A stretch of DNA of 64,000 nucleotides. It comes from Oikopleura dioica. Taxonomy: Eukaryota > Animalia > Chordata. Every line of letters begins with the position of its first letter. Within the stretch, counting starts at the first letter, position 1. A program made the position numbers and the translations under genes. This document shows positions 13,858 through 60,408 of the stretch, in pieces. The notes below the pieces were generated by a model. That model worked only from the letters and a program-made list of their open reading frames with translations, was not told the origin of the DNA and made no database searches. Location of the stretch: NCBI GenBank assembly GCA_907165135.1, contig OU015568.1:2666001-2730000 (forward strand), read 5' to 3'.

Positions 13858-14838
13858 TTATTCGCAGGTGGCATCAGCGTCAGCAACGTATCCGGAGAGT
13901 CCTGCAGAGTCTGGGCAGCATTGGCTCTTGTTCAATCCAATCCAGTGGCTGAAGATTGGAAATAAGGAGATTGAAAGGGTTGAGAGGGGTGAAGCAGTGT
14001 TATTAATGATGACTTACTAAGGTTTGTTGTGACCGCCGCAGCATTGATGCTCAACTGGAATGCCAGGAGTAGAAACGCAATTTTCTGGGTCTCTGTTGTC
14101 GAAGCCTCCGTAGAAGAAATGGTACTGCTCGTCGAAGACTCTGAGCTGGTTGAAGCTGTCCTTGGCGAACTGAACATCGCACTCAAACAGCTCTCGAGAG
14201 CAGGAAGACTCGTTGTCTTGCGACTCGAACTGCTTGTTTTTCGAGGAGAATTTCCAGGTGTACTCGACGAATTCGCCGATGCAGGTGTCTCCGTGCTTTT
14301 CTCGAACGCACTTTTGGCAGTCTTTGTAAGCCTTGCACTTGTTGTCCAAAGCGTCCTGAAGAAAAAATAAGGGAATGGCTCGAATAGAGATTTTTTACCT
14401 TGGGAGCTCCACGGCCCATTTCAGAGAGAGGTCGATCACCTAGGAGGTGACAGTGGCATCCGTAAGCCCACAACTGTCTCTCATCAAACTTGTCTTTTCC
14501 ATTGAGCCCGTTGACTTTCCACATTTTCTTGTGGATAGCCTTAAGATCGGCATATCGTCGGTCACCATCTGGGAGTGCTCGGGTTCCTGAATTTTTGCCA
14601 TAAAGATAGATTCAAAATGAAATTTTTGTTGTAAAAAAATTTTTTTGTAGACAATTTCATTTTTTTTCTCTTATTAAAAAGAAGCGAACTTACCGGCTCT
14701 CGCCAAGGCAGGAATCAAGGGTTCTTTAGTCTCGCAATCAACTTCAACGCCTCCGAAAACGCAAACATCGTCGTCAACGATTCCGTCGGTCTCCGCCAAC
14801 ACAACTGTAGCGATTTGAAAAGCGGCAAAGAGTTTCAT
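13858..14838 (-). CDS. Secreted PLA2-like (catalytically inactive) protein
   Basis: Signal peptide, YGCHC, GRGAPKDALDNKCKAYKDC, C-terminal CCGG..CC module; close paralogue of 19010-19977. Confidence 0.85.
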
Positions 14839-19009: not shown

Positions 19010-19977
19010 ATGAAACTTTACGCTTTTTTCGCCGCCATCGCTCTCGCCCAAGAAGACGACGTCGTCGCCGATGACGTCTGCATCTCCGGCGGAGAGGAAG
19101 TAAGCTGCTTGACTGTCCGAGGCCGAAAGGACAGAAACAAGAACAAGGAAGAGAACAGAAGCTCTTTGTCGCCCGAAGAGCGCCGATACGCCGATTTGAA
19201 GGCAATCGCCAAGAAAATCTGGGGCAACAACGGACTCAAGGGCAAGAACAAGTTCGACGAGCGAAAATACTGGGCTTACGGATGCCACTGCTACTTGCTC
19301 GGAGATCGACCTCTCACTGAGATGGGAACCGGCGCTCCAAAGGTAAAAAAAAGAGAAAATAATCTAGAAAAATTTTTGTGTCAAATATTTCCGATTTGCA
19401 TCTAAGGGTTAAACCTCCTTCCTCCCTTATCTTATCTTGAGTTTTTCTTTTTTCTAACGGAATATTTTTCAGGACGAGCTCGACAACAAGTGCAAGGCCT
19501 ACAAAGATTGCCAGAAGTGCGTCCGAGAAAAGCACGGTGACACCTGCATCGGCGAATTCACCCAATACACCTGGAGCTACAAGTCCAAGAACGGCATTGG
19601 CTTCGTTTCTCAGAACGAAGAAGGCTCCTGCGAGCAGGAATTGTTCCAGTGCGATCTCAAATTCGCCCAGGACACCTTCGCCGCGATGAACATCTTCAAC
19701 GAAGACTACCACTTCTTCTGGGGCGGATTCGACAACCGAGACCCCGACAACTGCCCCTCCAACGGTGGTATCCCAGTCGACCACCAGTGCTGCGGCGGTT
19801 ATGATCGACCCTAGTAAGTTTTCGAGAATTTTCTTAATTTTTTCTTGAAAATTTTCTTTTCGGATCTTTTTTTCTAAAAATCATTTTAGCCACTGGATCG
19901 GCCTCAACAAGAACAAGTGCTGCCCCGCTTCCGATGGCAACTCTGGAATCGTCACACCCGTCGAAGAAAACTGCTAA
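19010..19977 (+). CDS. Secreted PLA2-like (catalytically inactive) protein, 3 exons
   Basis: MKLYAFFAAIALA signal, YGCHC, GTGAPK|DELDNKCKAYKDC, CCGGYDRP|YHWIGLNKNKCC; GT-AG introns. Confidence 0.88.
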
Positions 19978-23674: not shown

Positions 23675-24252
23675 TTTTTTCTATTTTAGTTTTGATTTAT
23701 CTTTTAGATGATAGATTTATCAAGTGAGCAGTGATATTTATAGGAAGAACATCTGTGAAATTCTCGTGATCCGATTTTACTTTTTGCTGCTTTGGCAAGA
23801 ATTTCTTGGTGACGCTCTTAAATTCCATGAGAATTTTTGCATTGGAAAACAGAAATTCTCGCTGGAAAAACAAAGTAACGAAGCGGAATTTAACCGAAAA
23901 TAATTCAAATTTGACCCCCGTGGTTCAAATCTGTTGAACCTAAAATTTTAGTTTTTTTTTTTATCAAAAATTCTCATTTCTTAATTTTTTCATAAGGAAC
24001 AAGCCGAATTGGATTCGCACTAAACTTGACACTTATCATTTGTGACATATAAAACTACCATAAAAGTGCCATTTAACGAGATATGTGCATTGGGTCAGCT
24101 CCAACCTCAGAATGATTGATAGAAAAATTCTTTCTCTATCAATTTATTAGGCATAAACAATCCAAAATAGACCAGAGAACTTCCGAATAGTTCAGAAAGA
24201 TCCCGAATGGTTTCGGACATCTCGAGTTGTTTGAAGAGGCAAACGTCAAAAA

Positions 24253-25394
24253 ATGATGATAAGTGGAAATCAAGCAGCATTTTCTTTTCTCATTTTCATC
24301 TTTATTGGCGATTTTTGTCTCTTGCCGAAGATTTTTGGTGATAAAGAAAAAGAGCTTACTTCAGAAAAGATCATTCAAAAATCGCCTCCAGCAGAAAATG
24401 TTCTCCTTATGACAGGGTATAGAACTGGATCGTCTTTTTTTGGTCAACTGTTTAATCAAAATGACGATGTTTTATATGTAAGTTTGCTCTTTTTTAAAAC
24501 ACATCATGATCACACCATTAGCTTTTCGAGCCTGACCACAATTTACTGGGCGCGCTAAAAACGGAAACAATCAGCTTAGAGTTGCAAGAACAGTGGGCAA
24601 ATTTCATTTTGGACCTTTTTGAATGCAACTATTCAAATTCAACACCATACCTTGATTTTCTGGGCTACAGTCGTCAACTTGAAACTACAAAATTTGTAAG
24701 AAGACGGATTCCTTGAAACAACCTGCTTGCAGAAAATGGTATTTTATGAGAAGAGAGGCAGAAGATCTACGAAAAAAACAAGTGGTTAAAACGATAAAAA
24801 CGGCGAATGTGGAGGTTTTATTGCGTGTTGCGGATGATAGAAATGTCGATTTGAAGGTTCTTCTATACTACAGGTATATTTTTATATGAGCTCTATAATA
24901 TAGCCTATACAAAACAGCAAATACAAAACATAATTTGATTTTTTTTAAGAGACGCGCGGCCAGTCTATCTCAGCCAAAAAGCACTTGGAAAACTTCAAAA
25001 TTATTTTGAAAGTATCGAAAATTACTGCACTGAAAAAAGCAAGTTGAAAAAATTCTACGACGATAACCCTCAGTTTAACGAAGAGCTATATGAACAAAAG
25101 TTTGAAGACTTGGCCGAAAATCCAGTTGTTCAATTTCGGAAAATCTATGATTTCCTTCATTGGGACTATCCGGGGGAAGTAGAAGCCTGGATTAGGAAAA
25201 ATACTAAAGAATCTTCAGGTATTTATGAACTCGATTGACGCTTTTGATAAAAATATCTTTTAGATGGAGCTTATTCAACTTCGAGAAATTCATCAGCCAT
25301 CATCTCATCATGGAAGCAGAAAATCGACAAAAAAGAAAAATTCAAAGTTGATGGTATTTGCAACGAATATTTAAAACTTCTTCAATATGAATGA
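24253..25394 (+). pseudogene. Carbohydrate (6-O-type, CHST1-7-like) sulfotransferase with a 1-nt frameshift at ~24682 (pseudogene or assembly error)
   Basis: TM anchor, 5'-PSB motif TGYRTGSSFFG, LFEPDH; exon-by-exon paralogy to 46388-47498, with the frame broken at GAAAC-TAC. Confidence 0.75.
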
Positions 25395-46387: not shown

Positions 46388-47498
46388 TTATGAAATTTCA
46401 TATTGAAGCAGTTGCAAATATTCTTTACATAGAGCGTCGACTATAAACTTTTCCTCTTCGTTGATTTTCTCTTTCCAAGAAGAAATGATGGCTGATGAAT
46501 TCCTCGAAGTCCCATAAGCTCCGCCTATTTAAAATTCAGAAGAAAAAAGCTGAAGATTTCTTACCTGAAGACGACTTCGTATTTTTTTCGATCCAGGCAT
46601 TTAAATTTTCCGGAAAGTCCCATTGAAGAAAATCGTAAATGTTTTTTGAATATAAAAATGGGTTTTCCGCTAACTCCTCAAATTTCAATTGATGAAGTTT
46701 GTTTTGAAGCTGGGGATTTTCGTCGAAAAATTTCTTTTCCTTGCTTTTTTCGTTGCAATAAGTGCTCATTTTCTTATAATATTGCTGATCACGCAGTTTC
46801 CCGAGCTTTTTTTGGCTAAGAAAAACAGGTCTTGCGTCTCTAAAAATTATTTGAGAAGATAAACGCTGAAAATCTTAACCTGTAGTAAATGAACACCCTT
46901 AAATCAACATTTCTTTCATCCGCAACACTCAGTAAAACATCGATATCTGCAGGTTTTATCGTTTTTATCACTCGTTTCTTTTGATGACAAAGTTCTGCCG
47001 CTTCCGTCCAGTTCCATCTCCTACATCTACTTCTTTTTGATGATGCGGTCTCGTCGCAAATTTTGTAGTTGTTGAGCTGACGACTCTTTTTGGTAAAAGG
47101 AAGATATGGTTTTGACTTGGTGAAGTTGCATTCGAAGAGGTCAAGAATGTAGTTTGCCCATTTTTCTTGAATTTTCGGGTTCATGTATCCCCTTTTTGCG
47201 AGATGTTCATGATCGGGCTCGAAAAGCTTAGGACATTCATAATAAATAATTTGTAACAACACGAGCTTACATATAAAACATCTTCGTTTTCATTGAAGAT
47301 TTCTCCAAAAAACGACGAGCCAGTTCTATATCCTGTCAAAAGAAGAACATTTTCTGCCGGCGGAAGTTGCTTTGGAATGATTTCTTCTGATTTGAGACTG
47401 TTTTCTCTATCATCAGAAGCTCTCGATAAACCATAAAACATCGTTATTAAAAAAAGAACCACAAAGAAAAATGTGAATTGATTTCCTTTCATCATCAT
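46388..47498 (-). CDS. Carbohydrate (6-O-type, CHST1-7-like) sulfotransferase, intact
   Basis: Type II TM anchor, TGYRTGSSFFG, LFEPDH, VIKTI, FEELAENP, GAYGTSRNS. Confidence 0.88.
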
Positions 47499-48742
47499 TC
47501 GGACAAGTTAGAAACTGCCAATTCTTGTTTTTTCTTCTTATCTCTTAGTTATTAAATGAGTCTTGAAAGATCAATAAAAGGGGGGCTCAAATATAACAGG
47601 CAAACTTTTCCCGGGGACCACAATTTTAAAGGTTAATTATTATACATTAACTTAATGTGTCCAGGGAAGAATATTGAACCCGTTAGAATTGTGGCCCCTT
47701 TTTATGAAAATATCAGTTTCGAAAAGGATTTCGGCGTCTCTGAATTTTAAACAGAACCTAGCCAATGGCTAGAATCCTGTAAGTAATTCATGCTGACGGC
47801 AAGACTCAGCAAGTTGTAGCCGTGTAACGAAAATCACATCTGCCGCGGTAAAAAGGACCCGAAGCAAAACTCCTTTTCGGCCAAGATTTTCTGTTTCTCG
47901 TCTTTTTTTTTCTTCAACAAAGTTGTTTTTTCGATCTTTATTCTATTTCAGAGATAACTTTTCACGTAAGTATGGAAGGAATTTTTCAAGAATGATTTCT
48001 AAAATGCTGTATCTTCGGGTTTCTCGGTAGCTTAAAAATGAATAATTATTCAACATGATTATTTCTCTCGATTACCAGTAGCTAGGCGAACCTTCTTTCC
48101 ACCCTTTCTCGCTTTTTTATGCTTCTCGTGAGATTGTTTTTCGCCAAAGACTGAACAAATTTCTCAAGTGCAAAAAACTTACGCCACAAACCGAAATTCT
48201 TCTGGAGGCGGAATGACTCTAAAGGAATAATTTTCATTTTGTCGAAGGAAAAATGGTACCTTTGTCGTTCGAGAATTTCATCGACAAATTGACTTCGTAT
48301 TGATCCGACGGGTCGGTCGAAGACATGGAGGAAAGTGAGTCTTGGGGACGAAGAATCCTCCGGCAAGGCATGGGAGTGTCAACGTGAGAACGCTGGCTTC
48401 CTTGACCGAAGCTCCAGATCTCATCGAAGCGAGCTAAAATTCGGTTCAAATTGATATTCTCTAGAGAGAAAGCAACTTTTAAATTCAATTTACAGAATAT
48501 AAAAAAAAAATATATGAAAATATTTACGAACCTTGAATTCTCTCTTTCGTCCAAAAATCCATTTTTCTTCCCAACCATGTTCACCCTCCTCTTTTAATGG
48601 TTGCCGTAGCACGCGAAAAGTGCTCAGACGAGCATCAAAGAAGGGCTTATTCACTGTTCAAAGCTCACATGCAATCGACTTTGAAATAAGAGAGGAAGTT
48701 TAATCGAATAATTTATTAATAAATAAATGCTCGGAGGCAGTT

Positions 48743-49949
48743 TTAGGCAACTTGTTCCAAGTAAATAGGATCTCCAACACGAATTTCGCCTTCTTTTACG
48801 ATCACGTGATCTGTGCCAGCTAGAATTTGAGTTAGGACTTAATAGACTTTCGTTGATTACCTGGAATTTTGCAGAGCTTTCTTTCTGCTAAGAAAGGAAC
48901 ATCTCTTGGGTTGATCTTTCTGAAAGTCTTGAGCGTCTTGGTAGGCTCGTCTTCCTGGCAGACTGTAATTTCTTCCTTGTCAACTGTAATCAGGGGGCAT
49001 CGTAGGGACTCTCGGGCCATTGCAATTATACAATCGCCGATGTGGAGTCTTCCTATCCATTTGTCTTCCTCCCAAGGCTCGTTTTTCAGCGTCTGAAGAA
49101 GATTACGAACGTATAAAAAAGAGAGTCTAACTTTGACAATGATATTGGACCGGAAATTCCAGTGAGAAATCTTGTCTCTATTCGCAGGAAGCTTTTTGTT
49201 GACATCATCGACCGAGTCTTGCGAAATCAGCTGAATCGGATAGTGATTGCTGAAATTGTCCGTTTTCATGTACTCGATGCCTTTCAATCTCCAGTCGAGC
49301 GCTTTTCCGTTCTTTTCCGGAATCCAGTTTGTCTTGCTGACGTCCCGGCCTTCTGGATTCACTGTCAGTCTTGTTTCTTCACCAAGATACTCAGTGAACC
49401 ACTCGGCTGCCGCATCCCCGCCGTCGGTTGCTTCGATTTTGTCTCCGTAAAAGTCGATTGAAGCCGGTTTTCCGCAGTCGGAAAGATTGAAAACCAGCGG
49501 TTTCATATCTGGCGCGGTGAAAATGAACTTCTCGTTGTTTGCACCTTCTTTGACTTCAATAAGCTTTTTCGAGCTTCAACTTTAATTCAACTTCAAACGA
49601 GAAAGATTTAGCTTTCGCTCTTTCCTTGAGCCGCAAGTTTTGAATGGCACTTGTTTTGACTCCATTCAACTTCCTCGTGGCGAAGAATCGATCGATCAAA
49701 TTTCCCGACTTCAATCCGAATCCGGTGACCATCGCTTTTGTCAGCGGGATTCCTCGGCATGTTTTAAGCGGAAAAATCACCAACTCTTCGACGTAACCGA
49801 CGAGCTTTTTCGATTGGACTTGTATTTCCGGCTCTCTTCAAAAAAATTAAGTTTCGAAAAATTTCGTTCAGTTACTTTGTCAGAATTTTATAAGCAATGA
49901 AGCTTGATACACCGGCGAGAATCGCGGAATCTGCAGCTGGAAGCTTCAT
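48743..49949 (-). CDS. MTARC: MOSC-domain protein, mitochondrial amidoxime-reducing component (mARC)-like
   Basis: N-terminal anchor, VGYVEELVIFPLKTCRG, GLKSGNLIDRFF, FRSNIIV, EDKW, RCPLITVD (Moco Cys), GEIRVGDPIY. Confidence 0.9.
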
Positions 49950-55995: not shown

Positions 55996-57646
55996 AAGTT
56001 CCATAATTTACTGTATCCAGGAAAAGGCAAAAGGTCTATTTCTTTTGATTTTCCTCGAAATCTTAAATCTACAATCTCACCTAAAACATCAGGTCGAGTA
56101 AATCGTCGTCTCCTATTCTCTACCATTTTCAAACTCAAAGATAATTCACCAAAAAGCACAAGAATCAGTCGGTTACTTTTTCAAAAAAAGCGCGATCGTC
56201 GCCGGCCTCCGCTCACGCCGCGCGGTTTGGAGGGCGCCACAGCGTTTTTTCTCAATCATCAAGAGCGGTGTTATGCGTTCTTATTTTTGTAATTAATCAT
56301 TTTCAAAGCATCGTTAATTTTTTTATTAATCAAATCTGCATATTCTTTTGATCTGTCGTTTTGCCTGCTAGATTTTTTTCTTTTTTTTTTGTTTAATTCA
56401 ATCTAATTCGATTGTATTTAATTGTTTATTGACAAAATAATTTGGTTCTCCATAACCACTTAGCTGTAAACTGCTTACCCCTTGCAACGAGCACTAGAGC
56501 TCCTTATCCATCAAAAATTCTATTTGAACAAAAACACACGAAACTTGTTGACCTTTTCCTCAAAACTCTGAGTTTTTTCTTCCTTGATCGAAAAAGGAAA
56601 AAAAAGATGATGACGGCGAGGAGACAAATTAATAAATCCTTATCATTCAATTTGCGAGGCAGTTATAACTGAAGATAAGTCACGCTAACAAGAGGTTAAA
56701 ATCCCCATCGATAGCAAAAAAGAAGGCATTCAGGAAACTTAAATTTGAGAAATTTGCTATCAAAAGAGTCATATTAAAGCTGACTGAGGCTTGAAAGTTC
56801 ATTCATTCGTATTTTAAAATACTCGTCAGTAATCGGATGTATTCGGTCAGAAAAAAAGTTTTCTTTATTGTCAAATCTCACTGCGGGGCCGGAGCGAAAG
56901 AGCAACAACCTTCCTCCTTTTTGAACAATTTCGAGCCGTTGAGCGTCTTTGCTCCTTGAAGTGGCTTGATTCTTAATTAACAGTGCTTACATCTCCTAAT
57001 CCGATAATACCGTTGTTATGCTTCATAACTTATAAGTTGCAATTTCTGCGCATAAAAAGAACTTTCTACCGAAGAAAAGAAGAAAAAGAGTTTTTCTTTT
57101 TTGTCAAAAAATTATCGCCGCAGATGCATGACAAATTAACGGGGGCACAATTTTCACGGAAAATCGTAAAAATGGCTACGTTTTAAAATTGAAATTGCGT
57201 CACACGTTAGACAGTCTACCTTTCTAGCATTCTAGAGCTCGATTTTAAAAAGGGGTTCGACAGATTATTCTTTCATTTTTGAACTTATGAAAGATTTTTG
57301 ATAATAGCGGTTCGAAAGTCACATATTTCCAATAATTCCACCCCTAGATCTGATTGAAAATCATGTTTTTGGAAATCCACGTGAACTGAAAAAATGTGTC
57401 CCATGGCCGGTGGGTCAGCAGCCGCCCCAAACAACACTAAACAAGAAGCTAAACAACAATACTCTTGGGCACCACGTTGACTATTTTCAAGCGAATTAAA
57501 TATATAAACACGTTTTTTGCGTGTAACTACGGCTGAGAATTTTCTAACCGAGGATTAGTCTCTGTGGGGGCAGCAAATTATCAGAAACGTTTTTGGCCCA
57601 TTTCTTCAACGGGAAAAATAGACTTACACGGCTTCTACTCGTTTAA

Positions 57647-57979
57647 GGACCCCCCGTCAGCTTTTTTCGAAAAATCAAATTTCTGAATTTTAAAATTTTG
57701 ACCCCGGAAATGGATTCTTCAGGTCAAAAAACGATTTTGAGGCTTCATTTTTGGGGGTCTATCTCGACTCTAACACCTTCAAAATCGCATTTGAAAATTG
57801 GACTTTTCGTCGAAAATTGACAAATTTGCCTCAATTTTGGCATAAAAATTGATTTTTCTTAGTCAAATATTCCTCTTGTCATGTTTTTGAAGCAAGTTTA
57901 ACCCTCGGACGCATTAAGAACCAAAAATATGGTGTTTTAAAAATTTCCATTTTTCGAAGGAAAAAGCTGACGGGGGTCC
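57647..57979. mobile_element. Kolobok-like MITE, 333 bp, TTAA TSD
   Basis: TIR GGACCCCC(C)GTCAGCTTTTT / AAAAAGCTGACGGGGGTCC, with TTAA at 57643 and 57980. Confidence 0.85.
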
Positions 57980-58445
57980 TTAATAGCTGTTTACGCAACA
58001 AATGTTACATCTTTCATTCCCACTATCAAAATTCTAGAAACGGCTCTGACAGATTTAAGATCTAAGAAAGATCTACTTATAGACCCAACATGGTAAACTC
58101 CAGCATTTACAGGTTCCGAGTTATTCAAGCGGAAAGTTGGTATAATCGAAGGTAGTACCCTAAAATAAAACAGTCCTCTAGTTAGCGATGCTAATTGTTT
58201 TCTCTCAATAAAATTAAGAGCACTCTTAGAGTATCAGCAGGTGTACCCTCAACACAATCGTGGCTGTCGAAATATGAACGCGTAAAAGCATCACTTATCA
58301 CAAGAAGAGAGCATCGGTGGAGAGAAAGAACGCGCGCTTTGCGCCACAAAATTGCCACCTCGGTGGTTCTCGTTGGAAAGGTCTGTGGGAGAAGGTCCTC
58401 TCCTCTTAGGCATAGTAACTGGCTCGAATGGCGGACAAAGTCCTC

Positions 58446-58517
58446 GGAGAAGTAGTGCAGTGGTAGCACACCGGTTCATGAACACGGAGGTCCCTGGTTC
58501 GACCCCAGGCTTCTTCA
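58446..58517 (+). ncRNA. tRNA-like Pol III gene inside LTR1 (defective anticodon arm)
   Basis: 7-bp acceptor GGAGAAG/CTTCTTC, D stem GTGC/GCAC, T stem CCTGG/CCAGG with TTCGACC loop, A and B boxes, TTTT at 58522. Confidence 0.85.
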
Positions 58518-58816
58518 ATACTTTTCACTCGCCTTTGCCTGATCCTACAAACTGGTGAAGACAGTGGGTTGTCTAGGTAGCCAAAACAAACCCTAAGCTG
58601 AGATTGACAAAGGTTCACTCAGTAGCTCAGGAGAAGCTGAAGGTTGGGAGGGTTGGTAGGCTTGTAACGGTTGGGGACCGTGGCACCAGACAAAGAACCA
58701 AAACCCAAGGCGGCATATGTAAGACGAGTTGTTAGAGCAGTTACTAGGGGGAGTTGTGGGAGAAGGTCCTCTCCTCTTAGGCATAGTAACTGGCTCGAAT
58801 GGCGGACAAAGTCCCC

Positions 58817-58888
58817 GGAGAAGTAGTGCAGTGGTAGCACACCGGTTCATGAACACGGAGGTCCCTGGTTCGACCCCAGGCTTCTTCA
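58817..58888 (+). ncRNA. tRNA-like Pol III gene inside LTR2
   Basis: Identical to the copy at 58446-58517. Confidence 0.85.
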
Positions 58889-59175
58889 ATACTTTTCACT
58901 CGCCTTTGCCTGATCCTACAAACTGGTGAAGATAGTGGGTTGTCTAGGTAGCCAAAAACAAACCCTAAGCTGAGATTGACAAAGGTTCACTCAGTAGCTC
59001 AGGAGAAGCTGAAGGTTGGGAGGGTTGGTAGGCTTGTAACGGTTGGGGACCGTGGCACCAGACAAAGAACCAAAACCCAAGGCGGAGTTGTTAGAGCAGT
59101 TACTAGGGGGAGTTGTGGGAGAAGGTCCTCTCCTCTTAGGCATAGTAACTGGCTCGAATGGCGGACAAAGTCCCC

Positions 59176-59247
59176 GGAGAAGTAGTGCAGTGGTAGCACA
59201 CCGGTTCATGAACACGGAGGTCCCTGGTTCGACCCCAGGCTTCTTCA
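59176..59247 (+). ncRNA. tRNA-like Pol III gene inside LTR3
   Basis: Identical to the copy at 58446-58517. Confidence 0.85.
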
Positions 59248-59546
59248 ATACTTTTCACTCGCCTTTGCCTGATCCTACAAACTGGTGAAGACAGTGGGTT
59301 GTCTAGGTAGCCAAAACAAACCCTAAGCTGAGATTGACAAAGGTTCACTCAGTAGCTCAGGAGAAGCTGAAGGTTGGGAGGGTTGGTAGGCTTGTAACGG
59401 TTGGGGACCGTGGCACCAGACAAAGAACCAAAACCCAAGGCGGCATATGTAAGACGAGTTGTTAGAGCAGTTACTAGGGGGAGTTGTGGGAGAAGGTCCT
59501 CTCCTCTTAGGCATAGTAACTGGCTCGAATGGCGGACAAAGTCCCC

Positions 59547-59618
59547 GGAGAAGTAGTGCAGTGGTAGCACACCGGTTCATGAACACGGAGGTCCCTGGTT
59601 CGACCCCAGGCTTCTTCA
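59547..59618 (+). ncRNA. tRNA-like Pol III gene inside LTR4
   Basis: Identical to the copy at 58446-58517. Confidence 0.85.
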
Positions 59619-60408
59619 ATACTTTTCACTCGCCTTTGCCTGATCCTACAGGTCGTTGATGAGTTTGAGATGCAATCAGCGTTAGGTCAGGTGACAATCT
59701 GGAAGCGACGCGGCGAAATTATAGCTCGAACGCGTCGAAAATCACGCAATTCCAAATAATAGTAGTTTTCTCTTTCAGTTGAACCTGCAAAAATTTTTCG
59801 AATTCTCAAAGGCAACATTTGTTTTCTTGAAAAATTTGGTAATTAACGGATTTTCGGCTTCTTATTGGCCGTTGGGTCAAGCGCATTTTTTGACGAATAA
59901 GAAGCCTGTTTTAGCTTAATCAGCCAATAAGAAGCGAGAGACCTGTTTCAAAAAAAGTTTTTCATGAAATAAAAAGTTTGTTTTTACCGAAAAGCAGTTT
60001 TTTCTTGATGTTTTGAATCAAAGAAAAACTGGGTTTGCGGTCTTGTCACGATTTTTAACAAAATGGTGAATCAACTTTTACTGCGTTTTCAACGTGGTTT
60101 TATTTGATTTTGTAAGAGCTACTTGCTAAGGGAAATGGGGTCAACATGACGGAAAGACAAGATATCGTGGTTGATGGGGGAGACGTTTAGATAACTGCGA
60201 TACAAGCGCTTCCATGTTGGGAGTGGGCTTATGCGGCATCACCGCTGCCCAATTACCGTAATTTAGTTTTGATAAATCAGAAACGGTTTATGTTATTTGC
60301 AAACTTTCATCTTCTATCTGGTTTTTAGCGACTTTTGCAAAGTGGAGTTAACAGAAAAACAGATTTGCCGGTCTGCGTCGGCATATTTATCGAAATGAGG
60401 CTCTACGG

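Follow-up and report, generated by a model that had tools for sequence, protein, structure and literature searches.

A tandem array with the features of a Helenus-type TRIM in Oikopleura dioica, and a nine-nucleotide match between its PBS and the 3' end of its own tRNA-like sequence

A tandem array of short LTR-element units was identified in Oikopleura dioica, within a window of 64,000 nucleotides (the whole stretch of DNA that was analysed) of contig OU015568.1, the PAR chromosome in the OKI2018_I69 assembly (GCA_907165135.1; window position p is record position p + 2,666,000). The stretch 38743-59506 of the window matches OU015568.1 with 100% identity. The repeat structure of the array, its TG..CA ends, tRNA-like sequences, PBS-like and polypurine motifs, the short duplication at its flanks and its lack of coding capacity can all be read directly from the DNA. 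Together they are probably explained by a non-autonomous TRIM of the Helenus/TRIMp3 type that is mobilized in trans and primed by a cellular tRNA, and a cellular tRNA is the most likely primer. An earlier note on this DNA had proposed instead that the element encodes its own primer, on the grounds that its PBS is complementary to the 3' end of the tRNA-like RNA carried in its LTRs.

Results

Organization of the Array

Between positions 58384 and 59650, Tandem Repeats Finder identified a 371-bp unit present in 3.4 tandem copies. The array is organized as LTR-internal-LTR-internal-LTR-internal-LTR, with four direct repeats of 166 bp and three internal regions between them (Table 1), and one LTR-internal-LTR unit measures 537 bp. 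All four repeats possess TG..CA ends, the array both begins and finishes with a complete repeat, and the sequence GGTC adjoins the first LTR on its left and the last LTR on its right, as a 4-bp target-site duplication. LTRs 2 to 4 are identical and LTR 1 deviates from them at a single base (LTR position 61), a degree of similarity that points to recent activity or to homogenization. The earlier note described this anatomy correctly, with its LTRs, the tRNA-like sequence and the A and B boxes in it, the T4 run and the PBS.

Every internal region opens with AAC, followed by the PBS, TGGTGAAGA(C/T)AGTGGG, and closes with the polypurine tract AGGGGGAG and one T, after which the next LTR follows immediately. 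Regions 1 and 3 are identical (205 bp, variant A), and region 2 (193 bp, variant B) differs from them by C/T in the PBS, one additional A and a 13-nt deletion. The internal variants are ordered A-B-A although LTRs 2 to 4 are identical, which indicates that the array derives from at least two variants or from duplication of a dimer, and not from simple stepwise copying.

Table 1. Positions of the array's features in the window.
Feature	Position	Strand	Remarks
Target-site duplication GGTC, left copy	58380..58383	.	Abuts first LTR
LTR 1, 166 bp, TG..CA ends	58384..58549	+	One base off LTRs 2-4
tRNA-like 1	58446..58517	+	ARAGORN, Rfam; acceptor, D and T arms intact; anticodon arm reduced
A box of tRNA-like 1	58453-58463	+	B box at 58496-58506
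TTTT, possible Pol III terminator	58522..58525	+	Sole run of at least 4 T in 371-bp unit
Internal region 1, 205 bp, variant A	58550..58754	+	
PBS 1, C at base 10	58553..58568	+	3' half also in local hairpin
Polypurine tract AGGGGGAG	58746..58753	+	1 nt before LTR 2
LTR 2, 166 bp	58755..58920	+	tRNA-like 2 at 58817-58888
Internal region 2, 193 bp, variant B	58921..59113	+	PBS 2 at 58924-58939, T at base 10
Polypurine tract of internal region 2	59105-59112	+	
LTR 3, 166 bp	59114..59279	+	tRNA-like 3 at 59176-59247
Internal region 3, 205 bp, same sequence as region 1	59280..59484	+	PBS 3 at 59283-59298
Polypurine tract of internal region 3	59476-59483	+	
LTR 4, 166 bp	59485..59650	+	tRNA-like 4 at 59547-59618
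Target-site duplication GGTC, right copy	59651..59654	.	Abuts last LTR

tRNA-like Sequences in the LTRs

Each LTR carries one copy of a 72-nt tRNA-like sequence, and the four copies are identical. ARAGORN labelled all four as "His, anticodon ATG", and each scored 50.5 bits against the Rfam family RF00005, for which the gathering score is 29. The acceptor stem, which contains a G2-U71 wobble, the D arm and the T arm are all intact, and the discriminator base is A. The anticodon arm has only a 3-bp stem and an 11-nt loop in the Rfam alignment, and thermodynamic folding gives it as an extended hairpin capped by a tetraloop; with this arm reduced, the tRNA-like sequence cannot decode. Both an A box and a B box (GGTTCGACCCC) are present in every LTR. 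The CCA end is not encoded, the 3' end being followed by ATAC and then TTTT. This T run starts 5 nt past the tRNA-like sequence and no other run of at least four T is present on the forward strand of the 371-bp unit, a scarcity that carries no weight since about 0.9 such runs would be expected from the composition.

Complementarity Between the PBS and the tRNA-like 3' End

The three copies of the PBS that had been reported are its only occurrences, all on the forward strand, with 0.05 expected from shuffled sequences, and each begins 3 nt (AAC) beyond the CA end of a 166-bp repeat. As had also been claimed, the CCA-added 3' end of the tRNA-like sequence is exactly complementary to bases 1-9 of the PBS, with U71 of the G2-U71 wobble included. 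The reservation that few of these bases are informative holds too, with three of the nine belonging to the universal CCA and six being encoded. A match of six encoded bases has a probability of 2.4e-4 under uniform bases, and when the tRNA-like tail was shuffled 200,000 times with its composition preserved, a fraction of 6e-4 gave an anchored match of at least nine; with the frequent occurrence of A73 and C72 in real tRNAs taken into account, the chance of the 9-nt match is estimated at about 1e-3. The complementarity is real and not trivial.

In an ungapped comparison, 11 of 18 positions of the tRNA-like end and the PBS match, and seven of the nine bases at positions 10-18 are mismatched. RNAduplex predicted 13 pairs (nine, an internal loop, then four) with an energy of -19.5 kcal/mol, compared with -32.8 kcal/mol for a perfect 18-mer; a duplex of 15 pairs with two bulges, as previously put forward, was not reproduced. 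A single position of the PBS was said to vary, and to be the bulged one in that duplex: the variation was found, at base 10 (C/T), but the bulged duplex was not. Because internal regions 1 and 3 are identical, the C/T difference represents one substitution inside one array and not a set of independent copies, and a substitution between two variants of the same array carries no information on covariation. Either base would pair with a G (G-C or G.U), be it G67 of a tRNA that has this base or its counterpart in a local hairpin.

The 3' half of the PBS can form such a local hairpin (58562-58578), in which AGA(C/T)A and TGTCT enclose a 6-nt loop and the C/T variant is accommodated by a G.U pair. 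When the region 58446-58600 was folded as a whole, the acceptor stem of the tRNA-like sequence stayed closed and the PBS formed a local hairpin of its own; shuffled versions of the region fold at least as well (z = +1.22).

Search for a Primer tRNA

Among the tRNA ends compiled by Kojima (2024, PMC10886601 Fig. S2), the best anchored match to the PBS is one of 6 nt, with tRNA-Trp. PBS bases 12-16 (GTGGG) are the complement of the T-stem of bee and human tRNA-Leu in the same register, and bases 1-5 and 11-16 equal the site for this tRNA, with only the five central bases differing (PMC10886601 Fig. S2). This tRNA-Leu-like T-stem register suggests that the site reflects a different tRNA, one with another acceptor stem.

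A scan of metagenome contigs for the tRNA 3' end implied by the PBS returned 27 matches, two of which are true tRNAs and 25 of which are not tRNAs. The two, a tRNA-Ser-GCT (contig L008, 2806-2885) and a tRNA-Leu-TAG (contig L010, 7706-7786), finish in exactly the 13 encoded bases implied by the T variant of the PBS, and show that this end does occur in nature. Both contigs are metagenomic, AT-rich and organelle-like, and L010 holds 19 tRNA genes in 11 kb. The same scan applied to 185,579 prokaryotic genomes gave 11 matches and no tRNA. The remaining 36 matches from the two collections are due to chance, and neither collection yielded a cellular tRNA with the implied end beyond the two organelle-like ones; with the other matches not being tRNAs, the implied 16-nt tRNA end must be rare. 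Literature searches with the PBS and with the tRNA end it implies matched nothing other than PCR primers and an siRNA.

Coding Capacity and Search for Further Copies

The ORFs of the array have no homologues and coincide with no gene on record, and the array accordingly has no coding capacity. A full HMMER search of representative sequences with these ORFs gave one spurious match only, to a protein of 3276 aa, and a word-index search and two exact look-ups with them returned no copy of the family. A scan of viral contigs for the 3' half of the tRNA-like sequence gave no match, and when one unit was compared with the masked window by BLAST at low stringency, the matches were due to chance and no further copy appeared. 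No ORF for a reverse transcriptase was found in the window, in which the ORFs of host genes were searched singly, with exons not joined. Since no second copy was found, we infer rather than observe the dispersal, the partner element and the transcription of the family.

Discussion

Judged by its sequence features, the array is a tunicate member of the published Helenus/TRIMp3 class, and its architecture is one already known. Helenus comprises TRIMs with a tRNA-like sequence inside their LTRs, a PBS and a polypurine tract, with lengths of 311-1263 bp and, in animal families, 4-bp duplications; it is grouped with Cassandra, which carries 5S rRNA, and Ajax as TRIMp3 (Kojima, 2024, PMC10886601). 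The likeness is close: the array combines short LTRs (166 bp), each with a tRNA-like sequence and its A and B boxes, short internal regions (193-205 bp) without ORFs, a PBS whose TGG stands 3 nt after the 5' LTR, a polypurine tract before the 3' LTR and a 4-bp target-site duplication. The 537-bp unit is within the size range, and the tandem arrangement has been reported for LTR-11_DR (PMC10886601). The origin proposed for Helenus is the insertion of a SINE into the LTR of a TRIM, and the animal families have PBS regions in common with Gypsy elements only (PMC10886601). Two differences stand out. The host here is a tunicate, whereas the text and tables of PMC10886601 name no tunicate host and, among chordates, only fishes; the PBS and tRNA-like strings of the array are likewise absent from the sequence file and tables of that work. 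The array also possesses the 9-nt complementarity between the 3' end of its own tRNA-like sequence and its PBS, unlike the Helenus families, in which no complementarity between LTR tRNA-like sequence and PBS was found, the question of a retroelement supplying its own primer having been raised and rejected (PMC10886601).

Other classes share parts of this structure. The LTRs of Cassandra TRIMs similarly carry a small Pol III gene with promoter and terminator (PMC10886601), but that gene is 5S rRNA and the hosts are plants, whereas the gene here is tRNA-like; Rfam gave no 5S match in the window. Retrozymes, too, are LTR elements that are non-autonomous; each of their LTRs contains a small structured RNA, and tandem arrangements are frequent. 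Their structured RNA is a hammerhead ribozyme, and the Rfam scan of the whole window at the gathering threshold gave four tRNA matches only. A tRNA-like head and a Pol III promoter are features of tRNA-derived SINEs, but these are mobilized by LINEs and lack LTRs, PBS and polypurine tract, landmarks of LTR elements that are all present in the array. Tf1-type elements prime from their own transcript, whose 5' end folds back onto the PBS, and the array would resemble them, if it were self-primed, in drawing the primer from its own RNA and not from a cellular tRNA. An exact search of 58550-58600 found no stretch of at least 6 nt complementary to the tRNA-like sequence's first 15 nt; provided that transcription starts at the 5' end of the tRNA-like sequence, this excludes Tf1-type fold-back priming at the level of sequence. 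The mascRNA is a tRNA-like RNA without a working anticodon arm that is processed by RNase P and RNase Z and receives CCA; it is a processing precedent for the tRNA-like sequence, but it belongs to no mobile element and has no role in priming. A cluster of functional tRNAs was rejected as well: functional tRNAs would have an anticodon stem of 5 bp, a loop of 7 nt and an anticodon in use, and the tRNA-like sequence has a 3-bp stem, an 11-nt insert and ATG.

In the favored explanation, the array would have arisen from one insertion, marked by the GGTC duplication. The tRNA-like sequence would serve mainly as an internal Pol III promoter, through its A and B boxes, and as the R region repeated in the element's RNA. 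Transcription by Pol III would start at the tRNA-like sequence of the 5' LTR, and some transcripts would read past the first T4 run and terminate at the one in the following LTR. On this model, R would consist of the tRNA-like sequence and its trailer (about 80 nt), U5 of the last 24 nt and U3 of the first 62 nt of the LTR. An autonomous Ty3/gypsy element of the host, which here means the Tor elements, may provide the required proteins in trans. In the OKI2018_I69 assembly, Tor Ty3/gypsy elements dominate the LTR fraction, SINEs make up <0.1%, and 44% of repeats are unclassified. Tor elements carry env and are virus-like. A cellular tRNA would start reverse transcription from its CCA end at the TGG site, plus-strand synthesis would be primed at the polypurine tract, and integration would generate the 4-bp duplication. 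The cellular primer could match the PBS over at least 16 nt, or could share the acceptor end only, possibly as the parent of the tRNA-like sequence. The 9-nt match would then be either chance or inheritance, with the tRNA-like sequence and the primer tRNA sharing a parent with the same acceptor end. The array itself may have formed by unequal recombination between LTRs, or by the joining of two variants (A-B-A).

The proposal that the element supplies its own primer would have the LTR tRNA-like RNA made by Pol III up to the T4 run, trimmed by RNase P and RNase Z, CCA-tailed and annealed to bases 1-9 of the PBS. What speaks for it is the exact, anchored complementarity, with U71 of the G2-U71 wobble included and a chance of about 1e-3, together with the intact acceptor, D and T arms, the discriminator A and the TTTT 5 nt downstream. 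RNase P, RNase Z and the CCA-adding enzyme recognize the top half of the tRNA fold; this half is intact in the tRNA-like sequence, and mascRNA shows that such an RNA can be processed. On the other hand, a GG start together with a weak acceptor stem can expose tRNA-like RNAs to the addition of CCACCA and to degradation. The length of the match is less of an obstacle than the earlier note allowed in expecting about 18 nt, because the host-tRNA assignments of Helenus PBSs often rest on 8-12 contiguous nt (PMC10886601 Fig. S2) and nine is within this normal range; nor did the two collection scans yield a cellular tRNA with the longer implied end. Against self-priming stand the mismatches at PBS bases 10-18 (seven of nine, ungapped), the resemblance of bases 12-16 to the T-stem of another tRNA, the absence of any such complementarity in the class survey (PMC10886601) and the three PBS copies, which are not independent and offer no evidence of covariation. 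Weighing together a low prior (no precedent is known, and the published families show none), a coincidence of about 1e-3 and the T-stem-like distal half of the site, we consider a self-encoded primer unlikely, and a cellular tRNA is preferred.

Two further readings do without a self-encoded primer, and both are less probable still. The complementary segments TCTTCA (58512-58517) and TGAAGA (58556-58561) lie 38 nt apart on the same strand, and could form a stem of the R/U5 leader around the PBS in the element's own RNA, with no part in priming. Stems that flank the PBS are common in retroelement leaders, with comparable ones in retroviruses, but the predicted fold of 58446-58600 keeps the acceptor stem closed and the PBS in a hairpin of its own (z = +1.22), and a leader stem is very unlikely. 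The least probable reading, for which we see hardly any room, is that no retroelement is involved and that a PBS-like motif occurs by coincidence in tandemly clustered tRNA genes or pseudogenes, or in a satellite of 371 bp. The four tRNA calls of ARAGORN and Rfam, the tandem 371-bp repeat (3.4 copies) and the lack of another copy in the searches made would all be compatible with it, but the anticodon arm is defective, its ATG anticodon is not used by His tRNAs, complete TG..CA repeats stand at both ends of the array, TGG follows 3 nt after and the polypurine tract ends 1 nt before the repeats, and GGTC is present on both flanks. A TRIM mobilized in trans and primed by a cellular tRNA is the reading retained here.

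O. dioica has the most compact chordate genome, with few retroelement families, and a Helenus-type element in this animal extends the published range of the class to tunicates. To our knowledge, it is the first of its class in which the 3' end of the LTR tRNA-like sequence is complementary to the PBS. The question of an own primer becomes testable in this O. dioica family through a sequence census and small-RNA data; if it were true, a self-encoded primer would free the element from the tRNA repertoire of the host. There is also a practical consequence for annotation, in that standard finders call the tRNA-like sequences of the LTRs as four genes for tRNA-His (ATG), which can inflate or distort tRNA annotations, and further members of the family would add false tRNA genes to the automatic annotation of the O. 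dioica genome.

Other Features of the Window

A MITE-like element of about 345 bp (57641-57985) is located 400 bp to the left of the array. Its terminal inverted repeats share a perfect 16-nt core (57651-57666 and 57961-57976), and TTAA just outside both of its ends suggests a piggyBac-type target site. About 200 bp to the right of the array, AATAAGAAGC occurs three times within 80 bp (59857-59935), one copy being inverted, compared with about 0.35 copies expected in the whole window. Two of the three copies are preceded by CC, which gives CCAAT, and the cluster may be a promoter element of a neighboring gene.

Further away, an annotated OKI2018_I69 MOSC protein of 227 aa (P0001) is encoded at 48832-49506 on the reverse strand. 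Its closest relatives, from marine metagenomes, are 341-343 aa long with MOSC_N and MOSC domains, and the ORF in the window matches MOSC_N weakly; the gene model may lack an N-terminal portion. The window also contains two pairs of inverted duplications, 14236-14563 with 19178-19592 and 24252-25391 with 46397-47499. The copies of the latter pair are 21 kb apart, share about 67% identity over 1.1 kb and lie beside an exon with Ephrin_rec_like repeats.
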